64,000 bases of DNA from Bispira polyomma (taxonomy: Eukaryota), in NCBI GenBank assembly GCA_965649765.1, contig OZ287748.1, positions 96,038,001 to 96,102,000 of the forward strand, given 5' to 3'. Position numbers and translations under genes: made by a program. This document shows positions 570-64,000 of this stretch, piece by piece. The first letter of the stretch is position 1. Each line of letters starts with the position of its first letter. Below the pieces are notes generated by a model, which saw only the letters and a list, made by a program, of their open reading frames with translations, had not been told where the DNA came from and did not search any database.

Positions 570-3500
570 ATGTTTCCCTGGATCTATTTCTCACATCTCT
601 GCTGCATAAGTGTCCTCGCAGTTGTTTCTGATGGAGGATTTGAAAAAGCACAACCCATAATAAAAAAACTTAATGTAAGTTGAAGTTATAGTATATCTTA
701 TGGTCAGAAGTATTCTCAATGCACATTAATAGTGGGGACAAATTAGAAAGGAAACACATTTGTAGATCTAAATATTCATCCGATTTCAAAGTGCGTTCAT
801 TGATGTGTTATGGGAGATAAAATTTTCAAATGGAAAATTCAATTATGTACCTCTCAAAATAAGTCAGGCTTACATGTCTATAATAAGTATTTAATGTGCA
901 AAATGCACTACTCTTGTGAATTAGAAAATATCTTTATTCATGTGACTGTTTTGACAATTCAAAGCTACAATAATTGAGCATAGTTACTTTATTTAGTTGA
1001 TTAGACATTACTGTAATATATAAATATGAACATTGTCGACATGTAAATTATTGTCAGGCAAAATGATTTTATTAGCCTTCCTATATTACACATACTTATT
1101 TGTTTAAGTCAACATATAATTTCATTTACAAATACTTGGTAGTTTTGAACAGTATTATCTAACCCATATGAATTGGCCTTAAATTTATAAAGCTTTTTGA
1201 CAACAAGGTTACTGTGACCTAACCGTGATGCAAAGTTGAAAATGGTATAACCTTTAGTTGTGGTATTTTTCTAGGAACAATATGAATCCCTCACAATTGA
1301 ACAAATGAAAGATTGGATGAGCCCTCACTGTTTATCAAAGGTTATGAATCAACCACGTGGTCACACTATTGAAGTGGAATCAGCTGACAGTGTTTCTGGC
1401 TATATTCAGAATATTGCTAAGGACACTCAAAGTCTGGCTATATACATAACAAAAGAGAGCAGGAGTACAGGAACTATAGATTTATCAGGCATACAAAAGT
1501 TGACAAACCTAAAAAGGTTGTGTTTGACCATTCCATCTGACAATGATGAACCAGATATGTTCTTATCTAGCATAAAATACAACAAGAATATATCTGTAAC
1601 TTCACTACCCCTAAGAGAGTTGTTTATTGAAATACCTCTAAAATTATATGGTCATTATATGGACGATCTGCCCAACCTATTGGGTCATTCATCTCATATC
1701 AAAGTATTAAAGCTTCAGAGGCTTCAATTTGCAAGTGACATCTCTCACATGTTTAATCCATTGAAAAATTCAACACTTGTGGCATTGTCTTTCCAAACCC
1801 TCAAATGTGTTGCACTAAAATGCCAAACATTTGATATACAAACCATGGAAATCCTGCAGTCTTGCAATCTCAAGTATTTAGATATTAGCAGAAATGAAGT
1901 CATTGAATTAGCTGGAGGTTATATTATTCAAATGAAAAACTTAAAATACTTGGACTTGTCAAACAATCTCTTTGGTAAAACCGCATTTGCTTACATGTGG
2001 TTAGAGGTTTTACTGCATCAATCATTGGAGGTATTTACTTTTAACAACTTAGAAGTTCAAGACCCAATTAATAGTAAGAGGCAGGAAAGAAGTGCTACTA
2101 AAATATTGGGTGTTTGCTTAAGACACCTTAACATTAGCAGTGTCTTTAGTATCAATTTTGCAGATGAAGCAAAATACTGTAAGTTATTAAAATGTTTGGT
2201 GAAAACTGATTCTATACCTTGTGACAGATTCTCAACATTTCCCCAATTATTGTCATTGGTTGATTTCACTTGTACTCCAATAATTCGATTTCCAGTATTA
2301 AAATCAATGAAAGAGATTGTTATTTCCGGTTGGATTCAGAATGCATTATATGGAAATAGAGAGATGTATGGAGAACAAAGAATACATTGTTTTGACAATG
2401 TTTCACTGCATAAATTGGAGTTTTCTTGGAATAAAGTATTGTCACAAAATGCAATGACAGAAGATTATGTTAATAATGCGGAACTATCTGGCATAACGGT
2501 AGACATTTTAGATTTACGTCATAATGGTATGAAAATAAATCTTTCAAATCAAACAAAATTCTTTAGGTATCTCGGTACAAAACAACTTTACCTTGCAGGA
2601 AATGAGATATCTTTCAATGGTCAGTATAATTTTTGTGAATACAATCCGCTATTAGAAATAATAGACTTATCAAAGACAAGTTTATCAAGTATTCCACATG
2701 ATGCCTTTTACAACTGCAGTCATGTCAAACTCATAGACCTGTCAGACAACAAATTGACTTCACTAGAATTTTCTTTTCATCAGGACAGCAAACTTAAGCT
2801 TTTAAATCTTAGTTTTAATCAAATACATACAATTGGTGAAGAACTAATTCAAAGTTTGTCTACTTTATCAACTAAACAACCTTTATTGATAGATTTGGCT
2901 GAAAATATGTTCCACTGTGATTGTACAAGCCTTAAAACCATGACATTTATCAACAGCTACGAGCAAATTATAATTGCCAATGAAAAACTTTTGTGCATTG
3001 GAAATTTGGATGGTAAAACCTTCTTTCAAAGTATTATTGATATAAACATGGGAGACTTCTCACAAGCATGTCTTAATGATAATACCAGAATCATAGTTAT
3101 ATCATCTATGATTAATATATGCTTCTTTGTTGTTGCTATAAGCATATTTTTGGGCTACAAATACCGTTATCGTCTTAGAACCTGGTACTTCCACAAAATC
3201 TCACTAAGATACCGAAAACACACAAATAGGAACCAAAATTTTGGATCGCTACTTCATGATGACATCTCAATGGACTGTTTTGATATTGATGGCACAAATA
3301 GAGATCAAGAGAAGTATGATGCTTTTATATCATACTGTGCAGAAGATCGTTTCTGGGTACATAATGTCTTAGTGAAAGAGCTAGAAGATAATTTTGGTTT
3401 TGATCTCTGCATTCATTATCGCAACTTTCTTGCTGGAAGAAGCATTGCCGATGAAATTGTTAAAAACATTAAATGTAGCCGTGTGCTGTTAGTTGTATTA

Positions 3501-3866
3501 AGTGTAAATGCATTGAAGAGTAATTGGGTGGAATATGAACTTAACGTTGCTCATACTAATTCACTCATTTACAGGAAACAGCTTCTCGTCTTAAAGTTAG
3601 GTTCATTACCACGAAACCTCTTAAATGGTGTAGCACGACAAATTATTGACAGCAATGTATATGCTGAATGGCCAGATCTTGAATATGAAGCTAGGAGATA
3701 TGATTCTAGAAATGGTCCCTCAAGATGTAACTTAAAAAAGACCAATCAAAAGAAGGAAGAGCAGTTTTGGTATAAGGTCACCCGTACTATGTATAATGAT
3801 GATCATGGTCCTTGTTCTGCATCCTTATCATGTTGTACAAAGCGAGAAGTAATAACTAATGAGTAG
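570..3866 (+). CDS. Toll-like receptor copy 1, two coding exons join(570..674,1275..3866), 898 aa: signal peptide, LRRs, LRR-CT, TM, TIR
   Basis: Exon 1 (ATG at 570) encodes MFPWIYFSHLCCISVLAVVSDGG..., a signal-peptide-like sequence, and ends at a GTAAGT donor (675). The acceptor ttttctAG ends at 1274 and opens in frame (EQYESLTIEQ) into the 853-aa ORF. LRRs include LKYLDLSNN, VKLIDLSDNKLT and LKLLNLSFNQI. LRR-CT is NMFHCDC and the TM is IIVISSMINICFFVVAISIFLGY. TIR boxes are KYDAFISY, CIHYRNFLAG and FWYKV. The same exon structure recurs in copy 2. Confidence 0.93.
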
Positions 3867-5120: not shown

Positions 5121-5624
5121 GAAAATTTATACTTTCATGTATGTATCTTTTTTTGTATTTAAAAATGTTTAAATTTTTTGAAACACTGTGTAACCAAATT
5201 GTGTTGAATGTGATGCATAAGCCCTATATGAGGCTTGGCAACTGAAAAGTGTATTGCTTAATATGACTGATACTGTAATGTTGCATATCACTTTAATAAC
5301 CTTTCCTTTAGGTGCAATGAAAATTCAATTTTAAATATTTATCAGCCTCGGGCAGAATATCTCATTGAAGCCTTCAAGTAATAAGTTTTTGAATGTTCTC
5401 TCTGTTACCATTGAATATACCTGGGAATATAAATGCCTTTGCCAACAAACCTAAAAAGTGGTTGATAGATATACAAACAAGTGTTTCAAGAACAAGGGAT
5501 TTAATTTTAATTTGGAGTAATTCATCTAAGGTTGGACTGGGAAAAGACAGTTTTGAGAGTTGATAGATAGATTTGAGTATCATCAGCCTACAACTACGCT
5601 AAGGGGATGTGTGTAAGGGTAAAC

Positions 5625-6090: not shown

Positions 6091-6686
6091 TTATAAGCAA
6101 GACCTTAAGAATCCTTATTCCTAAATGAAATCTTTTCCTATTTATATTTTAAAAGGAGTGGTTACTACACTTTGTATTCTCAAATTTGGTTCTCACATAA
6201 TTTATAAGCATGGATTACTATGAATGTGATTTAGACCTCACTACAGGACCCTGGATTTAAACAGTGCAGATAAATCACGGGCTTAGCTCCCACTTATCAG
6301 TACTAAAAAGTAATAATTATTTGACTCATATTTTCAGTGTTATTTTGTTACTCAAATTATTGATTATAGTGAATATTGATTATGTTGATTATTTTGTAGA
6401 TTGTTTTTTAGTTTTATCATCTTACAAATAATAATGTGGCACCTACTTTCTATCATTAAGGTTTCACTAGGTGTATGGCTTTTTTGTTTCTTTCTGTTAA
6501 GAAATTATGTTGCCTGCTTTGGCTCACTTAATTATGCACACCTTAGTTAATGTCTGTGCTGCTAAATCTATGTTTCTTTTAAATTGGGGTTTCTATTTAT
6601 ATGTTTTTACTCATCATTACTCTACCACAATGGTGCATGGCCAGTGGTATAAATTTGACTGAATTTTACGTGGTTTAGTGTTATCA

Positions 6687-9600
6687 CAGTCCCCACCCCA
6701 CCAAGCCAGAGGATAATAAATAAGACATCTGCGGTTACTCTTTTATTATATATATGCAATCTCTAATACTACTATATATTTACAGATCAATCATGATTAT
6801 GCACGGTTATACATACTTTACACATTATTACATAAGCCACATTGGTCACAAACTTATTGTGACCATAACTTAAACTAGGATCACTTTAAGGGGATCTAAC
6901 TTGACTTTACGATAACCTTAAATTGAGTCACTACTTTAAGGGGACCTTAACAAATTTGTGCTAAAAGTGGGCACCACTCCAAGGTGACCTTAACTGTTAC
7001 ATAATGATTTTTTACATTATTTACATTTCTGGTTAGTGACCTCATAGTGTCACCATAACTACATGTGTAGGTATATTACACGAATACTTGAGTATTACAT
7101 TTGTACGTATAAGATTTAAACTCAATATAACATTAAAAAACCCTCAAAGCCCAACCTGTAATACATTTATTGCATTTTATCTAGAGCATTCCGTAGTGAT
7201 GTAGCCACAGTTTCACTCATACGGGACTCACCATGAATATATCTCCACACACAATCCGACGTCCAGCGTTGTATGCAAACGAGACACCTGGAAAGTGTGG
7301 AAGGTATAGTGGTAAGGGGCCAAGCCCAGGTGTACGTTGATTTTTGACAAGACCTTGCACACATGTGTGTCAGTTAGCACTTGCCATTGATGGTTAGATT
7401 TATACTGAAATAAGGGATCTAGCCTAGAAGCAGCATACAACTTGAATAGCAATTTTAAGGCCCTATATGGGCACAGTAGAGGGTCGGATAGCTTGGGAAG
7501 GGTAAGCAGATGTACTTTGTCACATGTTTGCAAGGTTTTTGTCCATTTGATTAATATTTTTACTGAATCTTTGGTAAAAAACAAATTAGCTGGGTTAAGA
7601 TGCCTAGTTGGATCAAAGGCCGAAATGGAGTGGGGGGATATGTTTGATATCCTCAAAAACCCTTGGTTGTCACATTTGATACACACTTTTTTCCCAGTCC
7701 AGTCAGCCTGAAATAACCTGGCAGCCAACGACACGTTGGCCATTTCTAAGTGCACAATATTAAGGTTCATATAATCTTTTGGGACTTGCAAATGGTACAC
7801 CCAATTCTTCCAGACACCCCCAAGTCCAGTTAAACATGCGTCCAACTCTAAAATGTGATCCACAGCCCTGTGGTCATACATTAAGATGCCATTGTATGAA
7901 GGAAGAAACATACTAAACCACCTCAGGTCTCTGTGAAAATTATTAGTGAGCTTGATACTACTTGAGTTATGAGGATTTCTTGATAATTCAAGCATTCTAT
8001 TGAGAAATGCACGAGCTGGTTTCACACATTTGTATATGTATAGTAGAAGCCCTAGCAGTGACTACAACTGACGTTTAGTACATGTGTTTTTTGTTAACCA
8101 GTTTTTAACTGTTTCTTGAATAGTAACTAATTTTTCCTTTGGTATTGAAATGGTATCTTCAACTGTCTCTATTGACACGCCCAAGCATACTGCCTGGGTT
8201 GCAGGTGTTATGAGACTTTTGTCACTGATATTTAAACCAAGATCTTGCAAGGTGCTAAATAAGCAATCATACGACAGAGGGCGTGCCATACCCGATAAAG
8301 TGGTCAATATAGTTTACGACACTGTAACCATGGCAATGCATAACGTAACGTACCATATCACTCAATCTTTGGAATATTTGGCTGCCATGACTACTTCCGA
8401 GTGGGAGGCACGTATCCATGTACACCCCCTGTCAATATAGGTCTAGGAGGTCATAGTCATGTGGGTATATTTTGACGTGCCTGAACGCACGGCTCACATC
8501 AATTTTGTGTAGTAGGGCACCCCTACCTAACTTGTTAAGTTCAGTAGTTATATGGTCAATTGTAGGGAAGGTCAACTTAAGCTTGACCCCAAATACTGGT
8601 TTTTGTCCACACTTGCGTTTACTGAGGCCTTTGGGGGCCAGCTAAGGTCAACTATTACCCTTCTATTGACCGAATTTGGTTTTTCTCTGCTCATGAACGG
8701 GGAGAAGTGCCCCCCTATAATTGGATGTTCAATAAAAGCACCTAATATGGCCCCATACTTGGCCTCTTCCTGCAAGTATACTTCAATGTCTTTTGGATGG
8801 TCAGTGGCCGACTTATGGTTATTGCCTTCCCACCTCAAAGGACACTGCCTATTAAAGTCTACCGGGAAACCAAATTCAATCAATTCCACCAACTGCTTAT
8901 CCCATTGAGATATGTGCGCCAATTTTTGACATTTAACTGTGAAACCAATGGTATTCGTGCATCTCTGAAGTTGTAATCTCCACTATTCTTGATTACCTCA
9001 TGTTGGTGAAAAGGATTAAGTATTGTTTGAGTGTTTCTTACTTGAGATTTGTCACTACCCATTGGATCAGACAAGGGGATAAACCCAAAGTCAAACTCTG
9101 ACTGAGTACGCCAAGCCTTAAAACTGGCCACATTGATCAAATTAGTACTGTCCATAACTGTTTCAACGGGCATGTCACCAATTATGTCAGTGAATGTCAC
9201 TTTGGTCAGTTTTTTCCAATTCCTTACCTTGTACCTTAAGTCTTGGCTGTCACCATCCTTACTAGTCGTAAGTGTTAAAGCCACGTCCATGTTTTTATTT
9301 GTGCCACCACTTTGGTTGTCTGTATAGGCCATTGTTCTTTTGGAATGAAAGACTTTACTAGTGACTCTATTGCTTTGCCTGTTTGGTGTCACTGTGCTTG
9401 TATACTTAAAACTTTGTTCACTTTTACATGCTAATAACGCCTGGGTTTCTTTTACATTAACACCAGTACGATAGAAGACTCTTGTTCTAAATACATTAGC
9501 CTGTACAACAGGAGAACCAGTGTATTTGACTTTCCCCAAGTCCACACCATTCTGTTCAACACATGCATTGGTACTAACCATATGATCATTTACTTGTTTT

Positions 9601-11417
9601 CTGCTGCCCTCACCCTGATCTAGACTTCAGCAGCTTGCTCGTTTTTGCGAACATTTTCTTTTTAGCAAATGTGCAATCTTTTTCAGGGTGATTTAATTCC
9701 CTTCCCCTGTCCAAACATGTTGAGCAAATATGTTTATGCATTTTTCCCCCTGTCTCATGATCTTTTGTGTGAGAGCAGCTACCGTTTTGAAAGTTTTTGC
9801 AAAACCAAGGTTTTCTGGTTGTTTCAGTACTTGTTGCCCAATTTGATTTACCCAATCCTGCTAGATGTTTTTGCGCATGCGTCCTGTGAATTCTATCTAT
9901 GCGAGATGTGTTTTGCCATGTCAAAGTGCCTCTCTCCATCTCGCACAACAGAACCGTGTGTGCCGCTTTAGCTCCCAGCCAGGAAAAATCTGTTGCGTCT
10001 TCCATAAGTTCAGACATGTACTGTACCATTTTGTCCTTAGTTTTACTATCATGTTCTTCTAAAATATTTTTACAGAAGCCCTGAACCCACTGTGTCAGTG
10101 ACAGCTGGTCATAAGCAAGTCCCCCCAAAATACATTCTTGAGGCCAGGCCACGCGTCGTTTGACAACCATGTCAACATTGCCCCTCCCTCCCCCCCCCCC
10201 CGTTTTAATTTAATTTTTGAGGTGAGAAATTTACCTGCCTGACATGCCCCTTCACATTCTAGTTCCCGTAACCTGCTGTCAACCTCCCTCTATGTCTTGA
10301 GAGGATCTTAACACAGACATAGTGGGTACCACAGATTTATCTGAAGAGGTGTCACTTTCACTTGATATCATTCTACTTTTGTAACTACTTTTACTCTTAC
10401 TATAATGTTTTTGACAATCTACATCACTATCACTTTCATTGTTTTTACTTTTCGACTTGCTTTTACTTTTACTGTAATGTTTTTGAGAAGCACTACTTAA
10501 CTTAGTATTGTACCGTCTGGCACTTGTGGTTTTCGCCCGCACATCTGTGACTTGTCCCTTGACCATGTCCAGTCGTGAATTCACCTTCTTGAGTTGCATC
10601 AGGATTTGCATCTGTACACTGTCCGTGTCCTCAACCGCTGACCCCGCCTTGTCCATCTCCAGACTCGCTGGCTGTGGTGTATTCTTCACTCCCTCTGCCT
10701 GTGAACTGCTACTGCCGTTGTCTGCCAAGGTGCACTTCTTCCCCGTGGATGGTGCGTGCCTGGTCATACATTTTTTGCACAATGTTTTATTGCACTTAGG
10801 CATTTTTAATTGTCAAAGTTATCTGAAATTTCTGAACAATATTCACAGCTCTCTGAACGCTGATGTGACAACTTCAAGCTTGTGACCAAAATTCGACCAA
10901 TTTGAACAACATTAACTAATTAAAATGATTTAGATTGTCCCTTTTAAGCTGCCCTTTCAGGCAATATAAGCATGAGGTTGTCAGATCAGCCGAGTGCACT
11001 CCAACTGTGTTCCAACTCCACTGAGTGAAAATTTCACAAGTACTATTCCATGTTCTAGTCCGTTTTTTAAGTCCAGTTTATATATGCACAATCACTAAAA
11101 CGGACTAAAAACGTAAAAACAGTTTGCAAAATTGATAAAAGCTTTTGTAAATATAAAAACCAGTTCTAAACAATTCAAGCACGTCTGTGCCATTCGATCT
11201 CAAGTTTTAAACTGAAGCTAAGTCACAAATGGGAGGTGAACCCTGACACTTGGGCTAATCAGAATTTAAGATAATAAACAATTTGAACCCCTAACAACCA
11301 GTGGAAATCCCATAATGTCATAACCTTTTTACCTGTTAAAATTAGTCTGGTAACTTAAGCAGATTTTTAAAGGGTGAGGCAGGACTGACTCCCGTGAAGC
11401 CTAAACACCACGAGTGA
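6687..11417 (-). mobile_element. YR retrotransposon element 1 (Ngaro-like proteins, atypical ends), 4731 bp, defective
   Basis: Gag pieces at 10803..9610 (CKKCMTRH; C-terminal CKNFQNGSC...HICSTC...H...C). Pol at 9581..7670 (RRVIVDLSWP, LELDACLTG, VHLEM, CDNQ). YR at about 7665..7170 (FLRISN, KWTKT, FHTF, WTSDCVWRY). An internal deletion fuses RNase H to YR. Ends are defined by the empty site gttgtca|aagcaagc at 46100/46101. Confidence 0.92.
6843..7057. repeat. Array of about 11 degenerate TAAGGTNACCTTA palindromes, element 1 3' region
   Basis: Examples: taggatcacttta 6876, tacgataacctta 6908, taaggggacctta 6937, agtgggcaccact 6966, caaggtgacctta 6980. Confidence 0.8.
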
Positions 11418-12895
11418 AAGCAAGCAAGTTGAACGTTAAAGTTAATCATAAGTAGAACAAATATAGTGGATAATGGACATCAGGCTAGTATTCTCAAAAT
11501 AAACTCATGCTCAAACTCAGTTAACAAAAATGTATGCTGTGTACATGGTAATAACCTATACTTGGACCATTCATTCTAATAGAGCTTTCAAGATTGGAAT
11601 CAAATATAAACTCAAGTTAAGATAAGTTTACTGTATCCAGAGTTGTCGAGAATCCTGGTTTGAGTTGAGTATCAGTTTGGGCTAAGTATGAGCCTAGAGT
11701 TACATAGAGTCTACTGTCTGTATTTCAAAAAACAATTAAGTAGGACCTCTGTCATCAGAACTATCTTTTAAGAACTGTATTTTATGTGGACAATGGCTTG
11801 TTTATGAAATATAAAAAGCATTTTAGTGAAATTTAAGCGTATGAATGTCAAGACATTGGGAATATGTTCATGAAAAATATAATGTGTATTTAGATAGTAA
11901 ATCTATAAATGGTATGAAGGTTTGTATTTAAATACCTACATGTAATTTAGACTATTCAGAATCTTACAAGTAACTTTCTCAATCATAAGCAACGTAAAAT
12001 TATATTTGTATACTTCTTACTAAAAATCAGAAAATAAATATGACACAGATGAATGTCCTCATTAGAAAATTTCAAAATGTTTAAATAGGAGGCAGATGAA
12101 TTTCCTAATATTGGAAAGTTCCACAATGTTTACTTTTGCTAAAAAATCAGAATATTAATAGGATGCAGAAGAATTTTTTTATATTGGAAAGTCCAAAAAT
12201 GTTTAAAAGATAACTTCAGAAAAAGTTCATAGTAACCTTTGGAAATGTTATAGATTGACAAGGTATTTTCTACCTCTGTACAATGAAATGATTACTGTCA
12301 TGGTTAATAGATTTGTTTAATTTGTTATGTGCATTTGTTTTTGCCTTCTGTGTTTTTAACCAGGCAGTCAAAGAGAACTATTGGGTTCGAATTTCAGGGA
12401 ATTTATATGTTTATCATCATTGATACCTCTCTTGGTAAATATGCATATAATTATTAGTACTCTGGTCAAAAGAGTTTATCAAATTTAATTAATGCTTTAT
12501 TGTTCAACATGTTAAAAATAGACCTGAAAACCTTTGCCCAATTACTTCCTCGAACTCTGTTCATGTAAGTTATATTTTTCTATATTTAGAAACTTTATGC
12601 AAGCTTCCTTATATGTAGTCTGGTCTTTAAAGGTAAAAAAGCTAAAAAAAAAAATACATTAGAAATTTCTGATACACCATAGTGCACAAGAATAGACAAT
12701 TTGAGAAAATGATTTTGAAAACTACCAAGATCATTTTTCTGAAAATAGTTTCAGTGCCCCGGGAAGGACGGCCAAATTTTTATAACTATAATGAAAATAA
12801 TTTGGTATAAGTTTGGAAGCAGAACACAGTTTGCGGTTAAAATATTTATTAAAAATTCCAGCTAGTCTTACTATGTACAGTTGTGTTTCAGGGCA

Positions 12896-13158
12896 TAAGG
12901 TGACTTTAAAGTCACATGAGCTCACAATGCGTGAGAGTTAAGACCACCCTAAAGTGGTAAGTAGAGGTGAGCATAGGAGATTAAGATTGACCTTAAATTT
13001 TTAAGTTAGGGTGACCCTAATGTTTTTGAGGTCACCTAAAATTGAGGTGTGAGGTAACCTTAAGCAGTTAAATTCCTAATAGTCAAGTTTAGAGTTAAAA
13101 GAGTATTAGCAAAGCCAAATGAGTACATTATGTACTAGTTGACTGTAAGAGGACCTTA
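12896..13158. repeat. Array of about 10 degenerate TAAGGTNACCTTA palindromes, element 2 3' region
   Basis: Examples: taaggtgacttta 12896, aagattgacctta 12983, tagggtgacccta 13007, tgaggtcacctaa 13027, tgaggtaacctta 13050, taagaggacctta 13146. Confidence 0.85.
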
Positions 13159-13263
13159 TGCCCAGAACATATGATTTTCTTTACTGTTATTGAATTATTG
13201 CATGACAACATATATTATGTGTGTTATAAATGTTGTGTTTACTATTTTACAATATTTTAAGAT

Positions 13264-14310
13264 TTACATATAAAGTTTTACATAGAGACTGGCAATAAAC
13301 GTCAGCCACCAAACACCAAATTTTGTAGGGGTAGGTTGTAACGCAGCTTTAAAGGAATCTGCCACCTGAGATCCAGCATCGGCGGAATCCGTTATATAGC
13401 GCCAGACGCAATCCGACGTCCAGGTGCCATGGCGTTGAATGTCCTGCAAACGGACGTTGTTATTAAACGCAAAAGTGGCACCTGAACGCCGGAAAGCATG
13501 GACAGTGAGAGAAGAAGCCGACAAACCAAGCACCTGCAGGATATTCTTGAGGTGCCTGCGCACCCTAGTGTCAGTCAGAGGAATCCACTGGCTTGCTAAT
13601 TTATATTGGAACAGGGGAAGATTTTTACCCCCAGGGGTAATGGTCAAAACGTTTTTGATGGCCCTCACCGGGCATAAGACAGAGGCAGGAAGAGCAGGAA
13701 TGGTGATTAACTTTACTTGGTCATTGGTTTGCAGGGTCTTCGACCACTTGATCATGATGACTGCATAGCCGTGTTTGAATAATACATCAGCCTGAGCCAA
13801 ATGCTTTAGAGGGGAAAAACCACTAATGGAATGAGGACACAAGTTTGACAATCTTAAGAAGCTGAAAAAACTTAACAAGTACACAGCTTTAAATACCTGA
13901 CCCATATACATTGAGTCGCATTTCTTGACTAAAGCAGTCATGAGTGGTATATCAAACAGAGACTTCAGCTTGGCCTGCAGTGGTCTGTTAACAAGGAGAG
14001 CCCGGTTATAGTAACTGATTTTCGGATCCAAAAAGCCATCCACGTTAACACTAAGCAAAATATAACGGGCCTTAATGGCTGAGATATAATTTACAATTTG
14101 TGCATGGGAAACCCTATTACAGGAAAGAAACTCTAGGAAACATAAAAGTTGGAACGTGGTCACCTTAGTAGGGGGCCAACACATGAAGGCCCCGAACGCC
14201 AAGAAGAGCCAGAACATCCTGTCATATGCTTTGCTGGTAGAAGTCGCAAAAGCAGAATTCAGACGCTGAACAGCCCTCCCAGTGAGTAGTGCTTCAACAG
14301 GATGTTTGAC
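13264..14310 (-). CDS. Tyrosine recombinase of element 2 (open frame)
   Basis: The catalytic R-K-H-R-H/W-Y set is visible: FSFLRLSN, KWSKT, HAFRRSGAT, HGTWTSDCVWRY. It is in frame with the RNase H tail in this copy. Confidence 0.88.
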   Translation of the reverse strand, partial: VKHPVEALLTGRAVQRLNSAFATSTSKAYDRMFWLFLAFGAFMCWPPTKVTTFQLLCFLEFLSCNRVSHAQIVNYISAIKARYILLSVNVDGFLDPKISYYNRALLVNRPLQAKLKSLFDIPLMTALVKKCDSMYMGQVFKAVYLLSFFSFLRLSNLCPHSISGFSPLKHLAQADVLFKHGYAVIMIKWSKTLQTNDQVKLITIPALPASVLCPVRAIKNVLTITPGGKNLPLFQYKLASQWIPLTDTRVRRHLKNILQVLGLSASSLTVHAFRRSGATFAFNNNVRLQDIQRHGTWTSDCVWRYITDSADAGSQVADSFKAALQPTPTKFGVWWLTFIASLYVKLYM

Positions 14311-16769
14311 TGCCAATTGATGTAATAGTCGGTGATTAGCAGTGGTTTCCTGCCATCTTGACAGCAAATCTGCTACCTTATTTTTAGCCCCCATGATATG
14401 TATGACATTAAGTTCAATATTGAACTGGCTAATCAGCATGTAGATATTCCTAGAATACGTGGCCAAGACGGAATCTCTGGTCTTACCACTTTGCAATATA
14501 CTTACTACCGCCTGATTGTCACATTTGACCAATAACTTATGGCCCCGCCACACCGAGGCCCAGATCTTCAAAGCTACTAGAATGTTTACACCTGGTCTCC
14601 ATAGATTCCCCCCATGCCTGTTAAACAAGCATCTAACTCGATTTGTGCTGTAACTTTACGATGGGAGAAGAAAGAAACCCCATTAAATTGTTCCATGAAT
14701 TTTATGAACCAATAAAGATCCCTGGTGAATTCAGTGGTGACCCTGATCTGCCTCTTGCTGTGATTTTGCCTCAGCATCTCAAGCATTCGATTCAAAAATA
14801 TCCTTGCATATTTTATACATTTTGCGACATACAATAGTAAGCCAACAAGAGATTGTAACTCCCTCTTGGTGCAATGAGTTTTTCCCTGCCATTCAAGGCA
14901 AATTGCTTTAATTTGGAGTAATTTTTCGGGGGGTATAGAACAAGTGAAGTTTTCAGTGTTTACTACTATACCCAGACACGTTACCTCTGTGGCAGGTGCT
15001 ACTAGTTTTTTCTCGCTGACAGTTAGCCCAAGTTTGGCCAGAAGTGCTTGTAACCTGATGTAGATTGTCTCAATTTTGCTGGGAAGCGATATTGACAAAA
15101 GATCGTCGATGTAGTTGTGTACGGTAAACCTTCCAACTTCATAATATACCTAACTGCGGTCGAAAGCCTCTGAAAAATTGTCGAACCGTTCTGGTAACCA
15201 AACGGTAGGGATTTATCTATATAATAGGACTTCCATTTTAAGCCCAACAAGTCTATGTCGCCCGGATCCATAGGTACATGGCGAAACGCCCTACTAACGT
15301 CTACTTTTAAAATTTTGCAACCTTTACCTAATCTGAGAACTTCTTTAGTCAAATTATCTACAGATGGGTATGACAAAATAAATTCAGTACCAAGGTAAGT
15401 TGATGGTGAGACTCCAGCATTAACCGAAGCGCCTTTTGGCCAACTAAGGTCCACGATTACTCTCCTATTGGTGGAACTCGATTTGTCACGTGTCATTAAT
15501 GGAGAAAAGTGAAGTTTTTCCATTGGTTGCTCCTTAAAAGGACCCAGCATCGCGCCCCAATCACATTCGTCCTTCATGTAAGTATCCACGTGTTCAGGGA
15601 ATTCTAGAGCCGATTTATGATTCTCGCCCTCTGATTGGATGGTGCTTGACCTATCAAAATCCAGGGGAAAACCGTATTTTATTAATAAAGGCAATTGCCA
15701 ATCCCAATAATTACTCAGATATTTGGCCCAGACCCCTGCGTGTAACTGAGAAGGGACAGGTATTTGTAAGCCCAAAAAATTACTTCTGCCATCAGCCCTA
15801 ATTAACTCGTGCATTTCCAAAATGGACATACTGTTATGCTTTACATTTTAATCCCCGATTCTGTCACCCAGAGTACTAATGGGAGTGAAACCATATGGAA
15901 ATTCCGTTTGTGTTTGCCATTCAATGAACGTGTTGACACCTTGAGCTTTTTGTAGCAGTAATTTTTTATTTTGTTTCCGACGCAGCTCCCAGGAATATTT
16001 GTCAGACCACACATTATATTCAGAAGTGTTAGCCCCGAAGTCTCCACTCCCCTGAATAGCACAGTGAACTGGGGAAATGACAATGGGGCCTCCACCCTCT
16101 GTGCCACTGCCCACCATGTGTGGTTTATTGGTCTCTGACTGGGGTCTTAGCCTGCTTCACACCTTTGTTGTTTCCTCTGCCCAAGCCGTTGAAATTCTTG
16201 GTATTGGCAGAGTCTTTTATACTGAGTGTTTTTTTAACACTTTCTCCCCCCCCATTGCCATGGTTCTGTGGGGTGTCAAAACATTCATTACTTCTTACAG
16301 CCCTATCCCCATTGTTTCCCTCACACCTTTCTTCAAGAATGGCGAACCTATTGTGGAGGGTGACAGCCTGTTCCCTAGGGTACTCAGGGCGTCTATTGAC
16401 CCTTTGTTCAGGTTTAACAAATTTCCCCACCTGTATTTTGTTGTCAAGAACATTTTGAACTCGAGATTTATGTTTACCTTTGGTTTGGGCAGTCTTCTCC
16501 CGCCCCTGCTGTTTAGACACACTACTACTTTGCCTTATATATTTACAAGCTACACCAGTTCCGCCTTTAACCGCGTCACTGTAACTGAAACCATTTTTCT
16601 TTTCTTTAACATACTGGCACATTTTATGTACCGTGTCTTTACAAAACAAATCAAAATCTTTGAAATTCGAGCTATAAACCGTTCTGGTCCACGCTACATT
16701 ATTTCTATTTTCATGCGCCACTGCACTATGGCAGTGGCTACCTAGTTTTTTGTAATTTTCTTGGTACAC
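14310..16769 (-). pseudogene. Pol (N-terminal extension, RT, RNase H) of element 2
   Basis: Motifs RRVIVDLSWP, KVDVSRAFRH and LPFGYQNG. A 1-nt loss near 15127 hides HNYIDD. RNase H shows IELDACLTGMGG, CDNQAVV and NKVADLLSR. A small deletion near 14588 removes the HLE segment present in element 1. No DIRS-type methyltransferase follows RNase H. Confidence 0.88.
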
Positions 16770-17753
16770 ATATTCGTTCTGTGACTGGCGTCACAAGTCT
16801 CGCAGGTATGCTTATAGAATTGGGTACCTGTTTTGTGGTTTGTCGGATACTTGCAAGTCCCTTCCTGGAAGAACCTGCATGTAACCGAGCCCTGTTTCGC
16901 CCCCGTCTTCTTTAAACCGACCCCTGAATTCCGAGCAGCATTCGCTGAAGCCGTGTTTGGGAGTATGTGCCTGGGCATGAGCCCTACGGATTCTATCTAC
17001 TTTGTCTGTGTCCGTCCAATTTAGCCTATCCATTTCCATGTTTGTCAAAATGACAGCGTGACAGGCCTTTGCGGCCTCCCAGGAGAAGTCCTGTGCATCC
17101 TCCATCAGACCCCCCATGTATTCTAGCATGGCAGCCCTGACTTTCGGACACTTTTCGTCCTGGATGATCCAAGTAAACCCGCTGACCCACTGTAGTAGAG
17201 TAAGGTCGTCGTAAGAAGGCCTGGCTTTGGAAGAACCCGACAAGACATCATTCTGTGGCCAGTCCACTACTCGTTTCACAATAACGTCCGTCCCCCCTCC
17301 CCTCTGCGATTTAACTTTACCTTGGGGGTTTTCATTCAGGGTTTTTAACTCAGCGAGCCGCTGCTCGACCTGCGTTTGGATTTGAACATTTTGCTTTAAA
17401 AATTCGACGCTAGGAACAATAGTGTCATTACCTTCAACAGGGTCACTTTCAAAGCTGGCAGAACTGATCCCGGAATCGGAAATAGGGTTACCACCCTTAG
17501 CACTGTTGAGGTTCTCGGTCAGAGCCGCCTCAGTCAGCTGCACCCGTTTGTCCATTTTTTCCATCGCTTCATTCATGGTTTGTAACTGTTTGAGAATAGC
17601 TTCAGAAATAGAATTACTTATTTGACCATTTTCCGTGGACTCCTGGGTGTGGCTGTCTTGGCTGGCCTGATCCTCAAAAGTGCAGTGTTTCCCTGTGGGC
17701 TTTGCATGTCTTTTAAAGCATTTCGAACATGAGTACTCTCTCACCGGAGACAT
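16742..17753 (-). pseudogene. Gag-like ORF1 of element 2, one frameshift
   Basis: ORF 17753..16812 (CSKCFKRH, VVDWPQ, MEDAQDFSWEAAKACHAVIL) shifts near 16972 (IRRAHAQ/RHILP) into the zinc finger CRFFQEGTC...HTCETCDASHRTNMC. It aligns with the element 1 Gag. Confidence 0.85.
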
Positions 17754-17967
17754 GACTATGTATAAGTTTGAATAATACTACAATAAAACCATTTAAAAGA
17801 ACTAAAAACATTAAAATTAAAGTAGATAAATTCAAGCCACGCCGTTTTTAAATGCTTGTTGTTCTGCAAACTTCGAAAAAGGCGGCAAAAGTTAGGAGGC
17901 GAGGGCTTTTATAGTCGTGGACAGCCCCCACCCCCTCACAATAGCCTGGTATCCCAGCACTGAATAA

Positions 17968-17987
17968 GGTAGCGCCGAGGCGCTACC
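17968..17987 (-). other. Perfect 5'-terminal hairpin of element 2
   Basis: On + it reads ggtagcgc-cgag-gcgctacc. The sense strand gives an 8-bp stem with a c(CUCG)g loop, extendable by G-U pairs to the second base of the element. Confidence 0.85.
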
Positions 17988-18463
17988 CCATACTTTTTCA
18001 TATATCGATTATATTTATTTCAGTATATAATCAAACTAATGTTACAATGTTACATCAAGATATAAAAAATACTATTTGGTAATAATTACGTTTACATATA
18101 TTTGGTAGGCCATACACTATTGGAAATTTGTTTCTGCGATAGTTGTAAAATTATTCCTAATATTAGTCCTTGTAAGATACTATTTCTGCTTCACCATGAA
18201 ATACTAACTCCAGCAATACACACTCTCAAAAATATTCCTCCACAGAGACCATATCATGGTAAAACAGTTATAAGGATCATTAATTTTGGACAGCTTTTTT
18301 TTGCCTAATACATATGGCTTTATTTTATTCTGTAAAGTGAGTAAGTTCAGCACGTTTTGGTTCACATAAAGATAAAATGTGTAGTAGTTTACAAAACAAA
18401 ATTTAGTGGCCACAGACTTGCATCGTGTGAATAATATCCTAACATTTGAGCTTTTTTGGTAAT

Positions 18464-21067: not shown

Positions 21068-24000
21068 GTATCTGTATCTGTAGTATACTGGATAACCTCC
21101 TATTGGAGTAACACATCCAGGCATGCATGGTGGTTTAAATAAAATTAGTAAGGGTTTTTCAATTTAGTTTTAAACGGTTCAATTGATTTTGCGTCAATAA
21201 TGTTACTATTCAAATTATTCCATATTGGAATTATCCTAGGAAAGAAAGAGTATTTGAACTGATCACACGTAGATCTTATGTGTTGAAACTGCAGGTGGTG
21301 TTTCCTTCTTGTGGATGAGGTTGACCGCTCCAGGTGCTCTTGGTGATCTATTCCTATCAGGTTGTTAATGGTCTTGTAAAAGAAACTGAGGCTAGCATCA
21401 GTCCTTCTCTGTTCCAGTGTGTCCCAACCTAGCTCCTCAATCATTTTGGTCACACTTGTCTCTATATTATAGTTTCTGCATACAAAACGTGCACTCCTTC
21501 TTTGTACTGCCTCAAGTTGGTAAATGTCCTTCTTAAAGTAAGGGTTCCATACAATGGCAGCATACTCCAGTTTTGAGCATACCAGAGCGAAATAGGCAAG
21601 TTCCTCGAGTTCTTTAGGGCAGTTAAACAGGTTGCGTCGGAGGAATCACAAAGTGGAGTTTGCCTTCTTACATACTGTGGAGATGTGAGTACTCCATTTA
21701 GCACTTGAATGAAGTAGGACGCCCAAGTAAGGGTTTGTATCCTTTTCCTCTAGGATGTGGTTACAAAGAGTGTACGGTGTGATAATTGGGGCTTTTGATC
21801 TGCTAAATCTCGTAACATAGCATTTTATGGGATTAAAGTGCATTTTTCATTGGTTTGCCCATTTTCTAAGGAGAGTAGGTCTTGCTGGAGGATAAGAGCA
21901 TCAGTTACTGTATTAATAGTCCTGTATAAAAGGCTGTCATCTGCAAAAAGTCGTACCTGTGATTTTACACGAGATGGTGGATCATTTATGTAGCATAAGA
22001 ACAGTAGGGGACCCAGTACTGAAACCTGTGGTACACCTGATGTAACTGGTGCTTCAGACGAAGATATTACATTTACTATAACTCTTTCTATTCTGTTAGC
22101 TAAAAAGGAGGATACCCAGTTATGAGCTAACCCTGCAATTCCCATAGAGTGCAGTTTTTTCAGTAGGAGACTGTGGCTGACTTTATCAACGGCCTTCGCG
22201 AAGTCTAGTATTATCATATTCAATTGTGCTTTATTGTTGTAGTGCTTGCATATATCATCTATTGTTACGATGAGTTGGGTCTCACATGAATGTTTACTAC
22301 GAAAACCATGTTAGTAGGGTGTTAAAATGTGATGTTTGTCAAGATGGTTTCGAATATGTTTACATATAATATGTTCCATAGTTTTACAACATACGCTAGT
22401 TAAAGATACTGGTCTGTAGTTTTCTGCTTCGTGTTTGTCACCTTTCTTAAAGATGGGTGCCACATTTGCTTTTAGCCAGTCTTTAGGGAGTGTACCACTT
22501 TTTAGGGACTGTTCAAAAATATAGGTGAGAACAGGTGATTATTCCTCAGCACAATGTTTTAACACTCTGTTTGCCAGATTATCTGGTCCTGATGCAGAAT
22601 TTGTTTTTAGTTACTGGAGGAGTTTGGTTACTCCTTTACGGCAGATGTAAAGATGGTCTATTTCAGGATATGTTGGATTAGGAGGTGATGTATCATCGTC
22701 AGTGTCCTGGGTGAAGACAGATTGGAATTGATTGTTAAGAATTTCGGCTTTTGCTTCATCATCACTGTTAAGCTTTCCATTTAATTTCAGGGGTTGGACA
22801 CCAATGTTTTCATTTTTCTTACTCTTCACATAGTTTCAAAATTTCTTAGTGTCTTTTTCTTCAAAGCTGGTTTTTAGGATGTTCCCCACATGATGACTAT
22901 GAGCTTTTCTGATTTCTTTTTGACATTGATGTTTTAGATCTTTGAATTTATTCCAATCACTTCTGCTATTTGAGCTTTTAGCCTTTTCATATAGTGTATT
23001 TTTCTTCTTAATCAGATGTTTTAGGTCTCTGTTTAACCATGATAGGTTGTATCTGGTTGATGTAATTTTAGATGGTACATTTTTAACAACTGCTTCATTA
23101 ATTGAGTTTTTAAAATACTCCCATTGCTCATCCACAGTTTTACACTTGGATTTGTAGAATTTATCACTAAAATCACTTAATTTATGTTTTACTGCAGCTA
23201 TGTTTTCATCTGTGTACTTATAGAGAGTTCGTGATTTTTTCTTGTTGTGTTTTGCTTGGATGTTGAAATCTGTAACTACTATATCGTGATCAGAAATTCC
23301 CGGTGTAGTGCTTACTTTATTTACCAGTGATGGTTTGTTGGAAAAAACAGGTCGAGGGTATTTTTGTCCCAAGTTGGTTCTTCCACTTGCTGTTCCAGTG
23401 AGAAGTCATCTGTTGTATTTAATAATGCGCTACAAAGTTTAATATTCTTGCCACTTGGTTTTGTACATTTAGTAGACCAGTCAATATCTGGAAGGTTAAA
23501 ATCACCTCCAAGCATTATATGCTTGTTACTAATGTCTTTTGGAAGTTGTTCTAGTGTGTTTTTAGACCTTCTAACAGTTCTTCTAAGTTGTTAGGGTGTC
23601 TATAGAAGCTTCCAATAATTAGACTTTTTGTGTTTTTCAAGTCTACTCTAGCCCATATAATTTCGGTGTTGTCTTGATCTAAATTCATGGCAGAAGATAT
23701 ATGATCAGTGTGTACTGCTATGAATACACCACCTCTGTTACTATTCCTGTCCTTTCTATAAATGTTATAATTTCGTGGAAATATTTCAGAGTTTGTAATG
23801 GAGCTTTCTAACCAACTTTCTGATCCAATAATTCAGTCTGGTTTAATATAATCAATGGCTGTTAAGAATTGTGGGTTATTCTTTTTAACGCTCCTACAGT
23901 TAATGACTATTGTTCTCCAGTGTTTTTTACTGGCAGGACCTTTTGTCAGCTTTGGTTTTGGAGTTCTTGGAGAAGATGTAGCCAGAGGGATTGGAGTTGG

Positions 24001-24577
24001 TGGAGGTGTGGACGGTAGTCCAGAGATTGTATTTAAAGACAAGGATTCAAAACGGGTTGAAACATCTAGTTCATAAGAATTAAAGAATGAGGAGTCAAAA
24101 TTAGGCAGACCACAATTACAACCAATCCACGACACATTTGAATGGTGTAGTGTGCTGTAAACAGCTGAGGATACATTTGCACAGGATTTATGATACCAGA
24201 TATTACAGTTGTCACAGCATATACCTTTTTGGTTCCAGCGAACGGGTTTATCACAACAACCACATGGAAATTTACAGGGACCTGGATTGATGTTTATGTC
24301 TCTAGAAGTAAGTAGTAGTGATAAAACATACCACGTTATGTTTCCATTTCCGTTATTGTACTGCGATGGGTCTGCGGTAAGATTGTGGCATCTTCTTGTC
24401 CTGAAGGTGCTGACACAAAATAAATCCAAGGATAAACTATCGAGATTGGTGAAGCTGTTGCTTAAGCCTGTATGCACTTTTTTTGAGTTTGATGATCTTC
24501 ATGGCGAGTGTGACTTAGAGTATTGATGAGAAGGTAGACGAAGCAGACGAAGAAGCACCTGGCAGTGGCCATTTTGG
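21068..24577 (-). mobile_element. Near full-length, frameshifted CR1/L2-group LINE: 2A-like motif, PHD finger, AP endonuclease, RT
   Basis: PHD CGCCDK...ICCDNCNIWYHKSC. Endonuclease INCRS, GGDFNLPDIDW, ISDHDIV. RT LDFAKAVDKVSH, GVPQVSVLGPLLF, LFADD. C-terminus SFFPRIIPIWNNL. 3' (GATACA)n tail at 21068-21082. 5' CAAAATGGC at about 24567-24575. Confidence 0.9.
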
Positions 24578-51438: not shown

Positions 51439-53771
51439 AGTGGGGGTTCCACATTCAGGATTTGGTCCCTGACCTTCCCGACTTTGAGGTCCGGGACACG
51501 TAGAGGAAGGTCGGGGAGCAAAAAAGGAGTGGTCGGGAAGGTCGGGAAGAATATCAAAAAAGTTAGAATTTTAAAAGTGGTCCCGACTTTTGGTCCCGGA
51601 CCTCAAAATTGGGACCATCAATACATTCGATCCTATTGCCAATACGTTCTGTCGGATAGGTCGGGGCGCACTGCTGGCCTGTCCTATTGGCGGCCCGTTC
51701 TATCCTATTGGGATCTGCCCCTTTTTCAATACGACAGGCCGGGCCGCCAATTCGATCAAACTTATTTGACTCCTGACTTGACGCATTACTCCCCGATCGA
51801 ACTTTTTGTCACCCCAGCAGAACTTGATGTAAGCAGGTTTTTTACCCCGATCGAACTTAACACAGCAGGACAGAACGTATTGGCTATCAGATCTGCCGGG
51901 AGAGGTAAAAGATCGAACGGGGGATAAGACAGAACTTATCAGCATTAGGTTCTGACGTATTCAGTACCGACCAATAGGATCGAACGGGGTTGTTTGAGTA
52001 TAAAAACATCCCATCAGTACGGGACTCGTTGTATTTGGAGATGGCTGACTGGCATGAAGTTGTGTTTTTTGTAGAGAGGGATTTTTATTGTTTTTAATTA
52101 GTTATATGTTTTGAGTTTAGGGCAAGTTTTATAGTTAGTTTTTTTTTATACACACAACATTAATATCAGCATTATGCCTCGATTGAGGAGAGTGAATAGG
52201 AAGATTGTGGAATAGGAGAGAGAGAAGGAGTTTGAATGTCATCAGATGAGATAGAGAGGAAGAGGAGAGATGACAGAGAGTCCTACAGTGAGTGCTGAGA
52301 GTGAGAGAGAGGATGCTTCACAAGTATTGCCTGGATCTTCACAGTACAGAGGACGCGTAAAGAAGGCCGGCAAGATGGTCCATGTCATTCTGACAGAGGA
52401 GGACGAGGAAGCAGTAGTGGATTTTGTCAGAGACAACGAGGTGCTTTTCAACAAGCGCCACAAACAGTTCAAGGACAGGACACTGAAGGAGAAGTTGTGG
52501 TCTGATTTCGCAGCTACCCGTGGTTTGAAAACCAACGAGGTTAGGACTTGGTTTGAGTCGCAGAGGACCCGCTTCAGCAAGTTGAAGGTTAAGAAGTTTG
52601 GACAGGCTGCACCCGATTTTACAGAGCGAGAGACATGGCTTATCTCGCACTTCTCTTTTCTTGGATTTCACATCGTCAGGCATGTCAGTCATCAGGCTTC
52701 AAGCCCAGTGCTACGTCTACCCAGGGAGTGTCCCCACCCCGCCAGGGAAGCCACGATGTGTCCAGATGTTCCAGCATCGGAGGAGAGGGCAACAGCGTCA
52801 CAGAGACCAGTCTCAGGAGCCTCCAGAGAAGTTCCCCGTCTCAGACGCCAACCAGATGCTTGGAGAGCACCTCACACAGATCAGGACACTGATGAGCAGC
52901 TTGCTTGGAGAGCAGAGAAGTCCCCAGAAGCCTGTGACCAACCGCAGCACGTTTTTCGCTTACCTAGCAGCCGAGGCAGAGAAGTTAGATGAGGGCGAGT
53001 TTCAGAGCTTCAGAGACAGCACCTTTTCCTGCCTCAGCCAGATCCAGCAAGGTAGAAGTCAACCCGTGAGGAGTGCCTTCGCCAGATCTGCCCCGACATC
53101 TACCCTGTCTCGAGTGCCTGGATCGAGCTACGTGGAAGTCTAATCTTCTCCGGGGGAGCTCAAGGGGTGCGTGGTGGTCTTGGGTTTAAATCCTCCTGAG
53201 CCTGAGCCTGAGCCTTGTCTTTGTCATGTTGTAATATAAGCATGAGGATACATATTTCAATATTAAAAAAAAACTAAAAATATCCCTAGTCTCCTCAAAA
53301 AATCTTCATCACTTCTTCCTTGCATTTTACTCACTTACTCAATTATTAATGACCTGATTACTTAAAAATTCCTGAGTTTTAGGGCTCAAAAATAGGTACT
53401 TATAGGGTCTAGAAGCACTCCCGACTTTAATTTTTAGAAAGTTTGATCCTATTGGTCGGGATGACCAATATGTCAGATCCTATGGTCAATACGTTCGATC
53501 CTAAGCCAATACGTTTGATCCTATCGTCAATAAGTTTGATCCTATCTAGGTCGCGAAGGTCGGGGTCAATGAAGTTCGAAGTCGTACGACCTTTACGTAT
53601 GATCGGGGTCGCGGGCCCGTCAAAATGGCGCCAATCAGTTCGATCGGGAAGGTCGGGGCACATTTTCATTTTCCCGCCAAAAAATGGATTTTATCGATGT
53701 TTTGGTCCCAACCTCCCCGACTTTAAAGTTGGGGTCTTTTTGCCAATCGAACTTGAGTGTGGACCCGCCCT
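51439..53771 (+). mobile_element. Non-autonomous PIF/Harbinger transposon, 2333 bp
   Basis: TAA TSD at 51436-51438 and 53772-53774. Imperfect TIRs agtgggggttccacattcagg / cttgagtgtggacccgccct. Dense subterminal cccgac/gtcggg and gatcctat repeats. It carries a MADF gene and no transposase. Confidence 0.85.
52270..53143 (+). CDS. MADF/Myb-SANT-like DNA-binding protein of the Harbinger element, probably frameshifted in its C-terminal half
   Basis: EEAVVDFVRDNEVLFNKRHKQFKDRTLKEKLW...VRTWFESQRTRFSKL is a MADF signature. The likely natural C-terminus (RSTFFAYLAAEAEKLDEGEFQSFR) lies in the overlapping frame 52598..53143. Confidence 0.8.
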
Positions 53772-62700: not shown

Positions 62701-64000
62701 ATTACATTATATATATAAAATACGAACTATTTTTCACTATATGTGGAACTATTTTCCCTATTTATGACCAAACTACTTCTTCAGTTCAAAATGGCGACCC
62801 TCCAGGGGAATTCTGCAATTTAACCCTAGTGCTTTCCCCTTCCATTTTTGGTCACTGAAACAATACTCCTTCCAAGAAACCAACATTACCTTTAAGTTCA
62901 ACAAAATAGTTCTCGGTTTTGACCAAATCTTTCTCTGATTCCTGACTCCATTATTAAACCTTTCTTATTTTGCCAAGTGTTTTTTATAAAATCTTTAATT
63001 CTGGACCCTAACCTTTTTTGTGTTACTGGATTGTTAGCTTCCATAATGTTATTAGCTTGATCCATGCCACCGAACATGTTAGCTAACAGAACATAATTGT
63101 AACCATCATTATATTGGGCAATTTTTGTCAAATCCATCAGGTGGGCATCCCACTGCTGATCTGTAGTCACTAGAATGACTTTGTTCTCTTAATATTCCTT
63201 CTTGTCGATTTGTGCAACGTATAAAGTGGCTGGTCCGTTTTTTAAGGAAATGCTAAACCACAAACATATTTTTAGATGTCAGGGCTGCCGAAAATAGGAG
63301 CCTTTGGGAAGAGGTTTAGTGGGACCAAACCTTCAATAAACTACTGTAAATTCTCCCATTAAATATCTTCACCTCTAACATAACCTCCCTGTTGAAAATC
63401 AAATAAATTAAAATTCAACCACTGCCCACAATACTCCTGCAAATAGACTGGTAATAACGTTGCATTCAAATCTGAATAACAAACAAATATCAGCACAAAT
63501 ATCCATAAAAAAAATTAGGCCTTAGCCAGAGCTTTTAATATTACTTCTGAAGTTATCTGCTTACCTGAGTGTATATCTACACATTTCCTCTGAAACATAT
63601 ACATGTTCTCCCAATGGAAATTTTCACCACGCAAACAATCTTGTCCATAAAAGTCACACACCAATGCGCCAAAATGTTGAACCACATAAGACAACATAGC
63701 GTACACCCATGTCAATAACAACCCATAGTGACGTCACACCTGCTGCGCATGTGCTGATGATGCCTAAATCTCTGCGGTATGGGTGCATATTGAGTTTGCA
63801 ATTTTTAAATATTTATTAGGAGACCAGCATCCACACACCTTTTCCAGGTATTTTCTGGTCATTAGTATATATTATATTTATCTCACCCAGTGAACAATTG
63901 TTTTTATCACAATCTCCTGAAATTTAGTGTTTACAATTTTATAAGTATATAGTGCTGTCTATGCAGAGTTACTGATTTATAGATGATAACCAAGGAACAA
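56758..64000. repeat. Large inverted repeat: arms 56758..59741 and 61017..64000 (at least 2984 bp), spacer 1275 bp
   Basis: Mirror ORF pairs 57037/63515, 57588/62898, 58886/61648 and 59243/61303. End coordinates sum to 120758 at both ends, so there is no net indel. Only a handful of substitutions were seen. Confidence 0.97.
60112..61016 (+). pseudogene. Toll-like receptor copy 3, truncated pseudogene
   Basis: Exon 1 has GGA>TGA at 60178-60180. A deletion of about 312 bp at 60562/60563 removes the splice acceptor. Coding sequence ends at ...FASDISHM, where the inversion begins. Confidence 0.92.

Follow-up and report, generated by a model that had tools for sequence, protein, structure and literature searches.

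The pairing between the ends of three tyrosine recombinase (YR) retrotransposons proved to be one local hairpin, which spans the junction between their repeats B and A. The layout of this hairpin was conserved in 14 junctions, the elements carrying it had exact ends and had inserted bluntly, and their target sites were biased. The best reading of these sequences, towards which we lean somewhat, is that the hairpin may be a folded sense-strand DNA site, similar to those of integron attC and phage CTX, that is used in single-strand exchange. A broader proposition, which in our judgment is evenly balanced, is that a clade of animal retrotransposons may integrate like an integron cassette: the YR would read folded single-stranded DNA by its shape and exchange one strand at almost any chromosomal site, giving blunt insertion without duplication or homology.

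The window, by which we mean the whole 64,000-nucleotide stretch analysed, belongs to an animal assembly of 1.04 Gb and is located in a duplicated Toll-like receptor gene cluster. A Toll-like receptor gene (LRR and TIR) and its broken or partial paralogues were located at 1305–3866, 33625–36198 and 60533–61144, in segmental duplications of 27–35 kb. Three elements were found on the minus strand, each coding for gag, reverse transcriptase/RNase H (RT/RH) and YR. From ~20 copies and three empty sites, their true ends were placed at 11417–6687 (element 1, E1), 17992–12752 (element 2, E2) and 45665–41022 (element 3, E3, an older decayed copy). Each element starts with T and finishes with ACTG, and in the E1 family the exact ends were common to ~20 copies. 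E1 (6687–11417) retains ORF remnants in the order A1-gag-RT/RH-YR-B1, without A2-spacer-B2; its repeat A1 measures 250 bp (11168–11417) and its repeat B1 ~460 bp (6687–7147). E2 (12752–17992) has the same A1-gag-RT/RH-YR-B1 form, with repeat A at 17843–17992, a gag-like ORF at 16812–17753 that is placed like ORF1 of intact relatives, a frameshifted RT/RNase H at 14275–16003 and a YR reading frame at 13321–14304. A fourth YR element remnant, with minus-strand RT and YR fragments, was noted at 49940–50990, with palindromes near 49946–50020; we looked for its ends and did not find them. Other features of the window were a decayed LINE-like element on the minus strand (21145–24477), identified from translations only by its endonuclease-like and RT-like ORF pieces; a GC-rich stretch (52270–53143) whose ORFs resemble a MADF-type DNA-binding protein and, to judge from them, possibly belong to a Harbinger-like transposon; and a 2984-bp inverted repeat (56758–59741 and 61017–64000), 100% identical and reaching the window end, which reflects either an inverted duplication of very recent date or an error of assembly.

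Because the segmental duplications supply paralogous copies, the window also contains an empty insertion site for each element. These were found at 46090–46110 for E1 (insertion point 46100|46101), 47930–47950 for E2 (47939|47940) and 6228–6248 for E3 (6238|6239). In all three cases the insertion was blunt, with nothing duplicated or lost. A one-base duplication of T was rejected, since the empty sites show that this T belongs to the element.

Judged by their sequences, the window elements are decayed Ngaro-type YR retrotransposons (order DIRS). As in published Ngaro elements (PMC9210276, PMC3783388, PMC8547959), the ORFs follow the order gag, RT/RNase H, YR, without a methyltransferase: on four intact pol proteins no methyltransferase family match was obtained at E ≤ 0.1, and the YR began right after RNase H. 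The split direct repeats of Ngaro, A1-ORFs-B1-A2-B2 (PMC9210276, PMC8547959), were present at the family level; the three window copies themselves are without A2-B2. Solo A-spacer-B units in the E1 family likewise correspond to the solo AB units known from Cafeteria (PMC9210276, PMC3783388, PMC8547959). Both the element type and the solo AB units are therefore already known, but the families described here differ from Ngaro in having a unique spacer of 0.1–1.3 kb between A2 and B2, and in the predominance of A..B forms in this genome. DIRS-1-like elements share with ours a sequence complementary to both joined termini and a circle junction as the point of integration (PMC7192593). In contrast to them, our elements have no long inverted repeats, no internal complementary region (ICR) near the 3' end, no methyltransferase and no duplicated trinucleotide at their two ends, and their complementary arm lies 30–32 nt inside repeat A. 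Self-comparisons gave direct repeats only, and a DIRS-1 reading with inverted terminal repeats and ICR was rejected for want of long inverted repeats. The PAT-like combination was also not found, as split repeats were present and the methyltransferase was absent.

The complete form was seen in young relatives, which comprised 41 distinct loci in nine families, most copies coming from one assembly of another animal (ENA assembly ERZ22147071). Their YRs were 46–60% identical to that of E2, and in most families the recombinases were identical across copies. The arrangement B1-A2-spacer-B2 was found in 38/41 loci, two of them cut at the 5' end and one with an extra unit, and the A..B form in the other 3/41; the active form in these relatives is A1-gag-RT/RH-YR-B1-A2-spacer-B2. 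In the young copies A1 equals A2 and B1 equals B2 at ~100% identity, and 0 nt separate B1 from A2, in this genome as well. The junction is therefore already covalently present inside the element. Within this genome, a copy of the E1 family (L025) has the layout A-ORFs-B-A-spacer-B-A-spacer-B, with a unique 122-bp spacer, and its A2 and A3 match positions 1–250 of the A1 of E1. In the E2 family a second 150-bp A copy was present in at least 6/26 copies, with a unit of ~1.33 kb, although counts for the E2 and E3 families are bounds, judged from coordinates only; the B1 end exactly adjoined A2 wherever that end was among the matches listed. Because the B|A junction is retained in one E1 copy, in these E2 copies and in the young relatives, we concluded that terminal redundancy exists, contrary to the original prediction that the elements have none.

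That prediction had pictured autonomous A..B elements whose RNA closes by pairing of its ends, followed by a jump of the RT or by end ligation. A..B forms are indeed the commonest in this genome (11/14 sequenced full-length E1-like copies, up to 20/26 E2 copies), end pairing is geometrically possible, and four A..B copies group as one clade in the E1-family tree, which leaves some room for an autonomous A..B lineage. However, decay was evident in all A..B copies of the E1 family (at least 2.3% apart, with 46–301 private changes and no ORF longer than 571 aa), the split-repeat copy L025 nests among them, and A..B forms are scarce in the young families. Moreover, several families carry a TATA-like box in repeat A, downstream of the hairpin, at +80 in E2 (17906–17913, a putative promoter) and at +91 to +93 in three others; the main or genomic transcript would thus probably be without the 5' hairpin. 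With the junction already covalent inside the element, closure of the RNA by jump or ligation was not supported, and we consider this model very unlikely. The simplest reading is that the window copies lost A2-spacer-B2 after insertion, presumably via recombination between B1 and B2. Annotators should note that in older genomes the split repeats of a Ngaro family can be masked by A..B copies.

Some copies deserve separate mention. Tandem expansions of A-spacer-B, the reciprocal of the loss giving A..B copies, were seen at positions 5289–6944 of L025 and 9579–12622 of another locus, L065. At L040 (reverse strand 169–1440) a 5'-truncated B-A-spacer-B copy is flanked by a directly duplicated 15-bp sequence, in contrast to the blunt insertions made by the YR; it is possibly a cDNA captured at a break, or a copy mobilized by a LINE enzyme. 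At L032 (reverse strand, 504–642 against 5330–5486; the region is duplicated as L034/L035) A1 and A2 are only ~83% alike and A2 is cut at ~160 bp, so that this copy is either chimeric or had a second subfamily inserted at its end. A scan of viral contigs did not find relatives.

We then consider the hairpin itself. In E1 the left arm of the basal stem is the 3' end of repeat B (6687–6702, ending in ACTG) and the right arm, starting with CAGT, lies at 11373–11387; the inner 30 nt (11388–11417) hold the poorly paired spacer, the apical stem and the loop, with the crossover at their 5' edge. As had been claimed, the 15-nt arm 11387–11373 pairs with 6687–6702 over 15 bp, with three G-U pairs and one bulged G. 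The 3' end is needed for this structure, as the 46 nt at 11372–11417 alone folded no better than shuffles (z −0.5). Folded as RNA, the contiguous E1-family junction of L025 gave −35.4 kcal/mol on the sense strand (z −3.9) and −20.8 on the antisense strand (z −1.9); as DNA, the values were −12.9 and −10.3. In E2 the basal stem is formed by the 3' end (12752–12764) and by 17952–17962, and the inner 30 nt (17963–17992) contain a 12-bp stem. This E2 hairpin (17964–17991) has the two G-U pairs and the C-U-C-G loop attributed to it, but the cYNMGg-type tetraloop is not conserved: loops in other families were unrelated and 3–12 nt long, and a role for the tetraloop was rejected. Its RNA fold gave z −5.5 for the sense and −4.3 for the antisense strand, and as DNA the strands were equal (−9.2 and −9.1). 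In E3 the terminal G faces a U (T in the DNA), also as claimed, and the inner part is 37 nt long, not 30–32 nt.

The original prediction further held that the pairing works on the sense strand through G-U pairs. A leaning to the sense strand was confirmed: this strand folded better in 11/14 junctions as RNA and in 12/14 as DNA, and G-U outnumbered A-C pairs by 39 to 9, or by 43 to 5 with corrected registers. The claim was nevertheless overstated, because the 6-bp core is Watson-Crick, the antisense strand folded equally well or better in 3/14 junctions (RNA), and both strands can fold. The strand gap in DNA folding was small, and about half of the G-U excess lay in the spacer, where a run of G is opposite a run of pyrimidines.

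Comparison of the 14 junctions revealed a fixed layout, consisting of a basal stem of 6–8 bp, the crossover, a poorly paired spacer of ~5 nt (positions +1 to +5) and a covarying apical stem. The partner arm starts 30–32 nt past the crossover in 13 of the 14 junctions, the exception being the decayed E3. Basal positions −1 to −6 were Watson-Crick in 80/84 cells, with a compensated change from C-G to A-T at −3 in three families. The sequence of the apical stem varies among families, and yet 78/98 of its positions were Watson-Crick, compared with 55 ± 3.5 (maximum 67) when arms were swapped between families under the same offset search; the families are related, so these counts and their p values are inflated. 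A one-base offset was present in 8/14 junctions, not at a fixed base. RNAalifold found two-sided changes in 10/16 pairs. Distant metagenome families (YR 27–37% identical) had this geometry too; in them the basal stem consisted of A/T pairs throughout and 5+5 nt were left unpaired. Five A/T pairs at that spacing occurred at 0.5% of background positions. Two paired boxes, an unpaired spacer and a structure conserved with covariation, as in attC sites, were thus all present. Covariation across families (RNAalifold) and strand asymmetry (the G-U excess), on which the original prediction had staked itself, were both found, and its claim of a conserved structure at the circle junction that leans to the sense strand was borne out.

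These data also bear on the view that a perfect inverted repeat decayed by transitions, leaving G-U pairs that carry no strand meaning. The copies here are old and rich in transitions, and the elements were likewise present, with transition decay, in three sets of sequencing-run contigs (none recorded as RNA). However, the G-U positions were common to nearly all copies of a family, including near-identical young ones, and decay would yield A-C as often as G-U. The shared positions and the excess of G-U over A-C largely refute this explanation, to which we give virtually no credence.

Target sites were compared in a logo of 53 insertions, which showed G at −7, A at −4, W at −2 (52/53 sites, p = 2e-9), W at +1, G at +2 and W at +8 (p = 1e-5), these p values being inflated by the relatedness of the families. 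The logo left out copies with damaged ends (L071, L076, L032/L035) and one-ended copies, none of which had a 6-bp-shifted pattern; one included locus (L053) was one base off register, with the W−2 count unaffected. The consensus resembles the element's own basal box around a 6-bp spacer, and its dyad symmetry, though modest, was highest for a 6-bp spacer lying 3' of the crossover (r = 0.49). Homology of the 53 targets to the element's own spacer did not exceed chance, and a requirement for homology in the target spacer was rejected. Copies with ends shifted by 6 bp were absent among ~50 sequenced insertions and the 41 young loci, and permuted A-B-A-ORFs-B copies were absent among the 41 young loci, which is indirect evidence consistent with one product type.

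One alternative places the function of the hairpin in RNA. At the internal B1|A2 junction, or during the step from RNA to cDNA, it would fix the ends by serving as a signal for priming, pausing, strand transfer or packaging, and a double-stranded junction would then be used by the YR. The G-U excess agrees with this, as does the strand gap of the L025 junction, far larger with RNA than with DNA energies; B1|A2 lies within the transcript, no primer is known for DIRS elements, and for DIRS-1 a hairpin at the 3' end has been proposed (PMC7192593). An RNA signal leaves three things unaccounted for, however: the position of the crossover, in every family exactly at the border of stem and spacer; the likeness of the targets to the basal box, arranged about a spacer of 6 bp; and the absence of shifted and permuted products. 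We regard this alternative as unlikely.

A rather improbable alternative, in our view, is that recombination takes place on duplex DNA, or on a cruciform that a supercoiled circle extrudes, by a homology-independent two-strand exchange of the Tn916/Tn1549 kind with biased repair of a mismatched spacer. The ability of both strands to fold and the two-sided symmetry of targets about 6 bp would fit such an exchange, and the Tn1549 integrase was among the fold matches of the E2 YR. But if two strands were exchanged without homology, some copies should have ends displaced by 6 bp, and permuted copies should arise as well from a double-stranded circle, which has two identical junctions; two product types and the use of both junctions are expected, whereas only one type was seen among the ~50 sequenced insertions and 41 young loci. 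Nor does this alternative offer a reason for G-U over A-C. Because neither shifted nor permuted copies were seen, we favour the exchange of a single strand, on a sense strand that folds locally.

Under this preferred reading, the YR would recognize the junction hairpin, folded in sense-strand DNA, as its attachment site. One YR monomer would bind the basal stem and cut at ACTG|T, and another would bind the apical stem, across the poorly paired spacer of 5–6 nt. A single strand would then be exchanged with chromosomal DNA at a degenerate site, and the host would complete the blunt insertion by replication or repair, in the manner of integron attC and the attP of CTX phage. In YR chemistry the 5'-OH end lies on the spacer side; the cut at ACTG|T would accordingly fall on the sense strand, in line with the bias to G-U pairs. 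A double-stranded YR site consists of two boxes with a 6–8 bp spacer (PMC4792948); the conserved inverted cores here are 30–32 nt apart, and YR geometry is reached only when they are folded. The model presumes that sense-strand DNA becomes single-stranded and exposed at one junction only, the outer one. The only DIRS cDNA measured, that of DIRS-1, is antisense and single-stranded (PMC7192593), and this is a real difficulty for a folded sense-strand site.

The specificity of DIRS recombinases has not been studied experimentally (PMC7192593). The E2 YR matched PF00589 weakly, and its model (pLDDT 86) matched the structures of Cre and Xer; integron integrase was not among the fold matches listed. 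Arrays of AAGGT-N-ACCTT palindromes were noted in repeat B of the three elements (6860–7070, 12896–13160 and 41170–41360), with related motifs in repeat B of several young families, and these arrays are possible accessory binding sites of the recombinase.

For Ngaro, the literature searched yielded neither a junction hairpin nor a target consensus, nor a model with a folded site, although its incomplete coverage does not prove absence. This window contributes the three empty-site cases of blunt insertion and the target logo with its 6-bp dyad; in addition, neither shifted nor permuted products were seen, and the premise that redundancy is lacking was refuted. With a defined substrate of ~50 nt, together with its strand, a position for the cut and a consensus for the target, integration becomes a question for a direct oligonucleotide assay. 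If the folded-site reading is true, these elements would be the eukaryotic equivalent of single-strand recombination as integrons perform it, and their recombinase would be one that makes blunt insertions at sites that are only weakly specified.

Among the closest known systems is integron attC with IntI (PMC2727003, PMC4792948), which the junction hairpin resembles in its two stems around an unpaired spacer, its variable loop, its conservation of structure over sequence and its short conserved core at the crossover; it would probably also work like attC, with one strand used. It differs from attC/IntI in belonging to a eukaryotic retroelement, in having a nearly unspecific target rather than attI, in the lack of evident extrahelical bases at fixed positions, and in a YR whose fold matches Cre and Xer, without an evident I2-like domain. 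The attP site of CTX phage, used by XerCD, also folds from the plus strand, within the single-stranded product of replication (PMC4792948), but our elements encode their own YR, have no dif-like fixed target, and carry a hairpin that is short and local.
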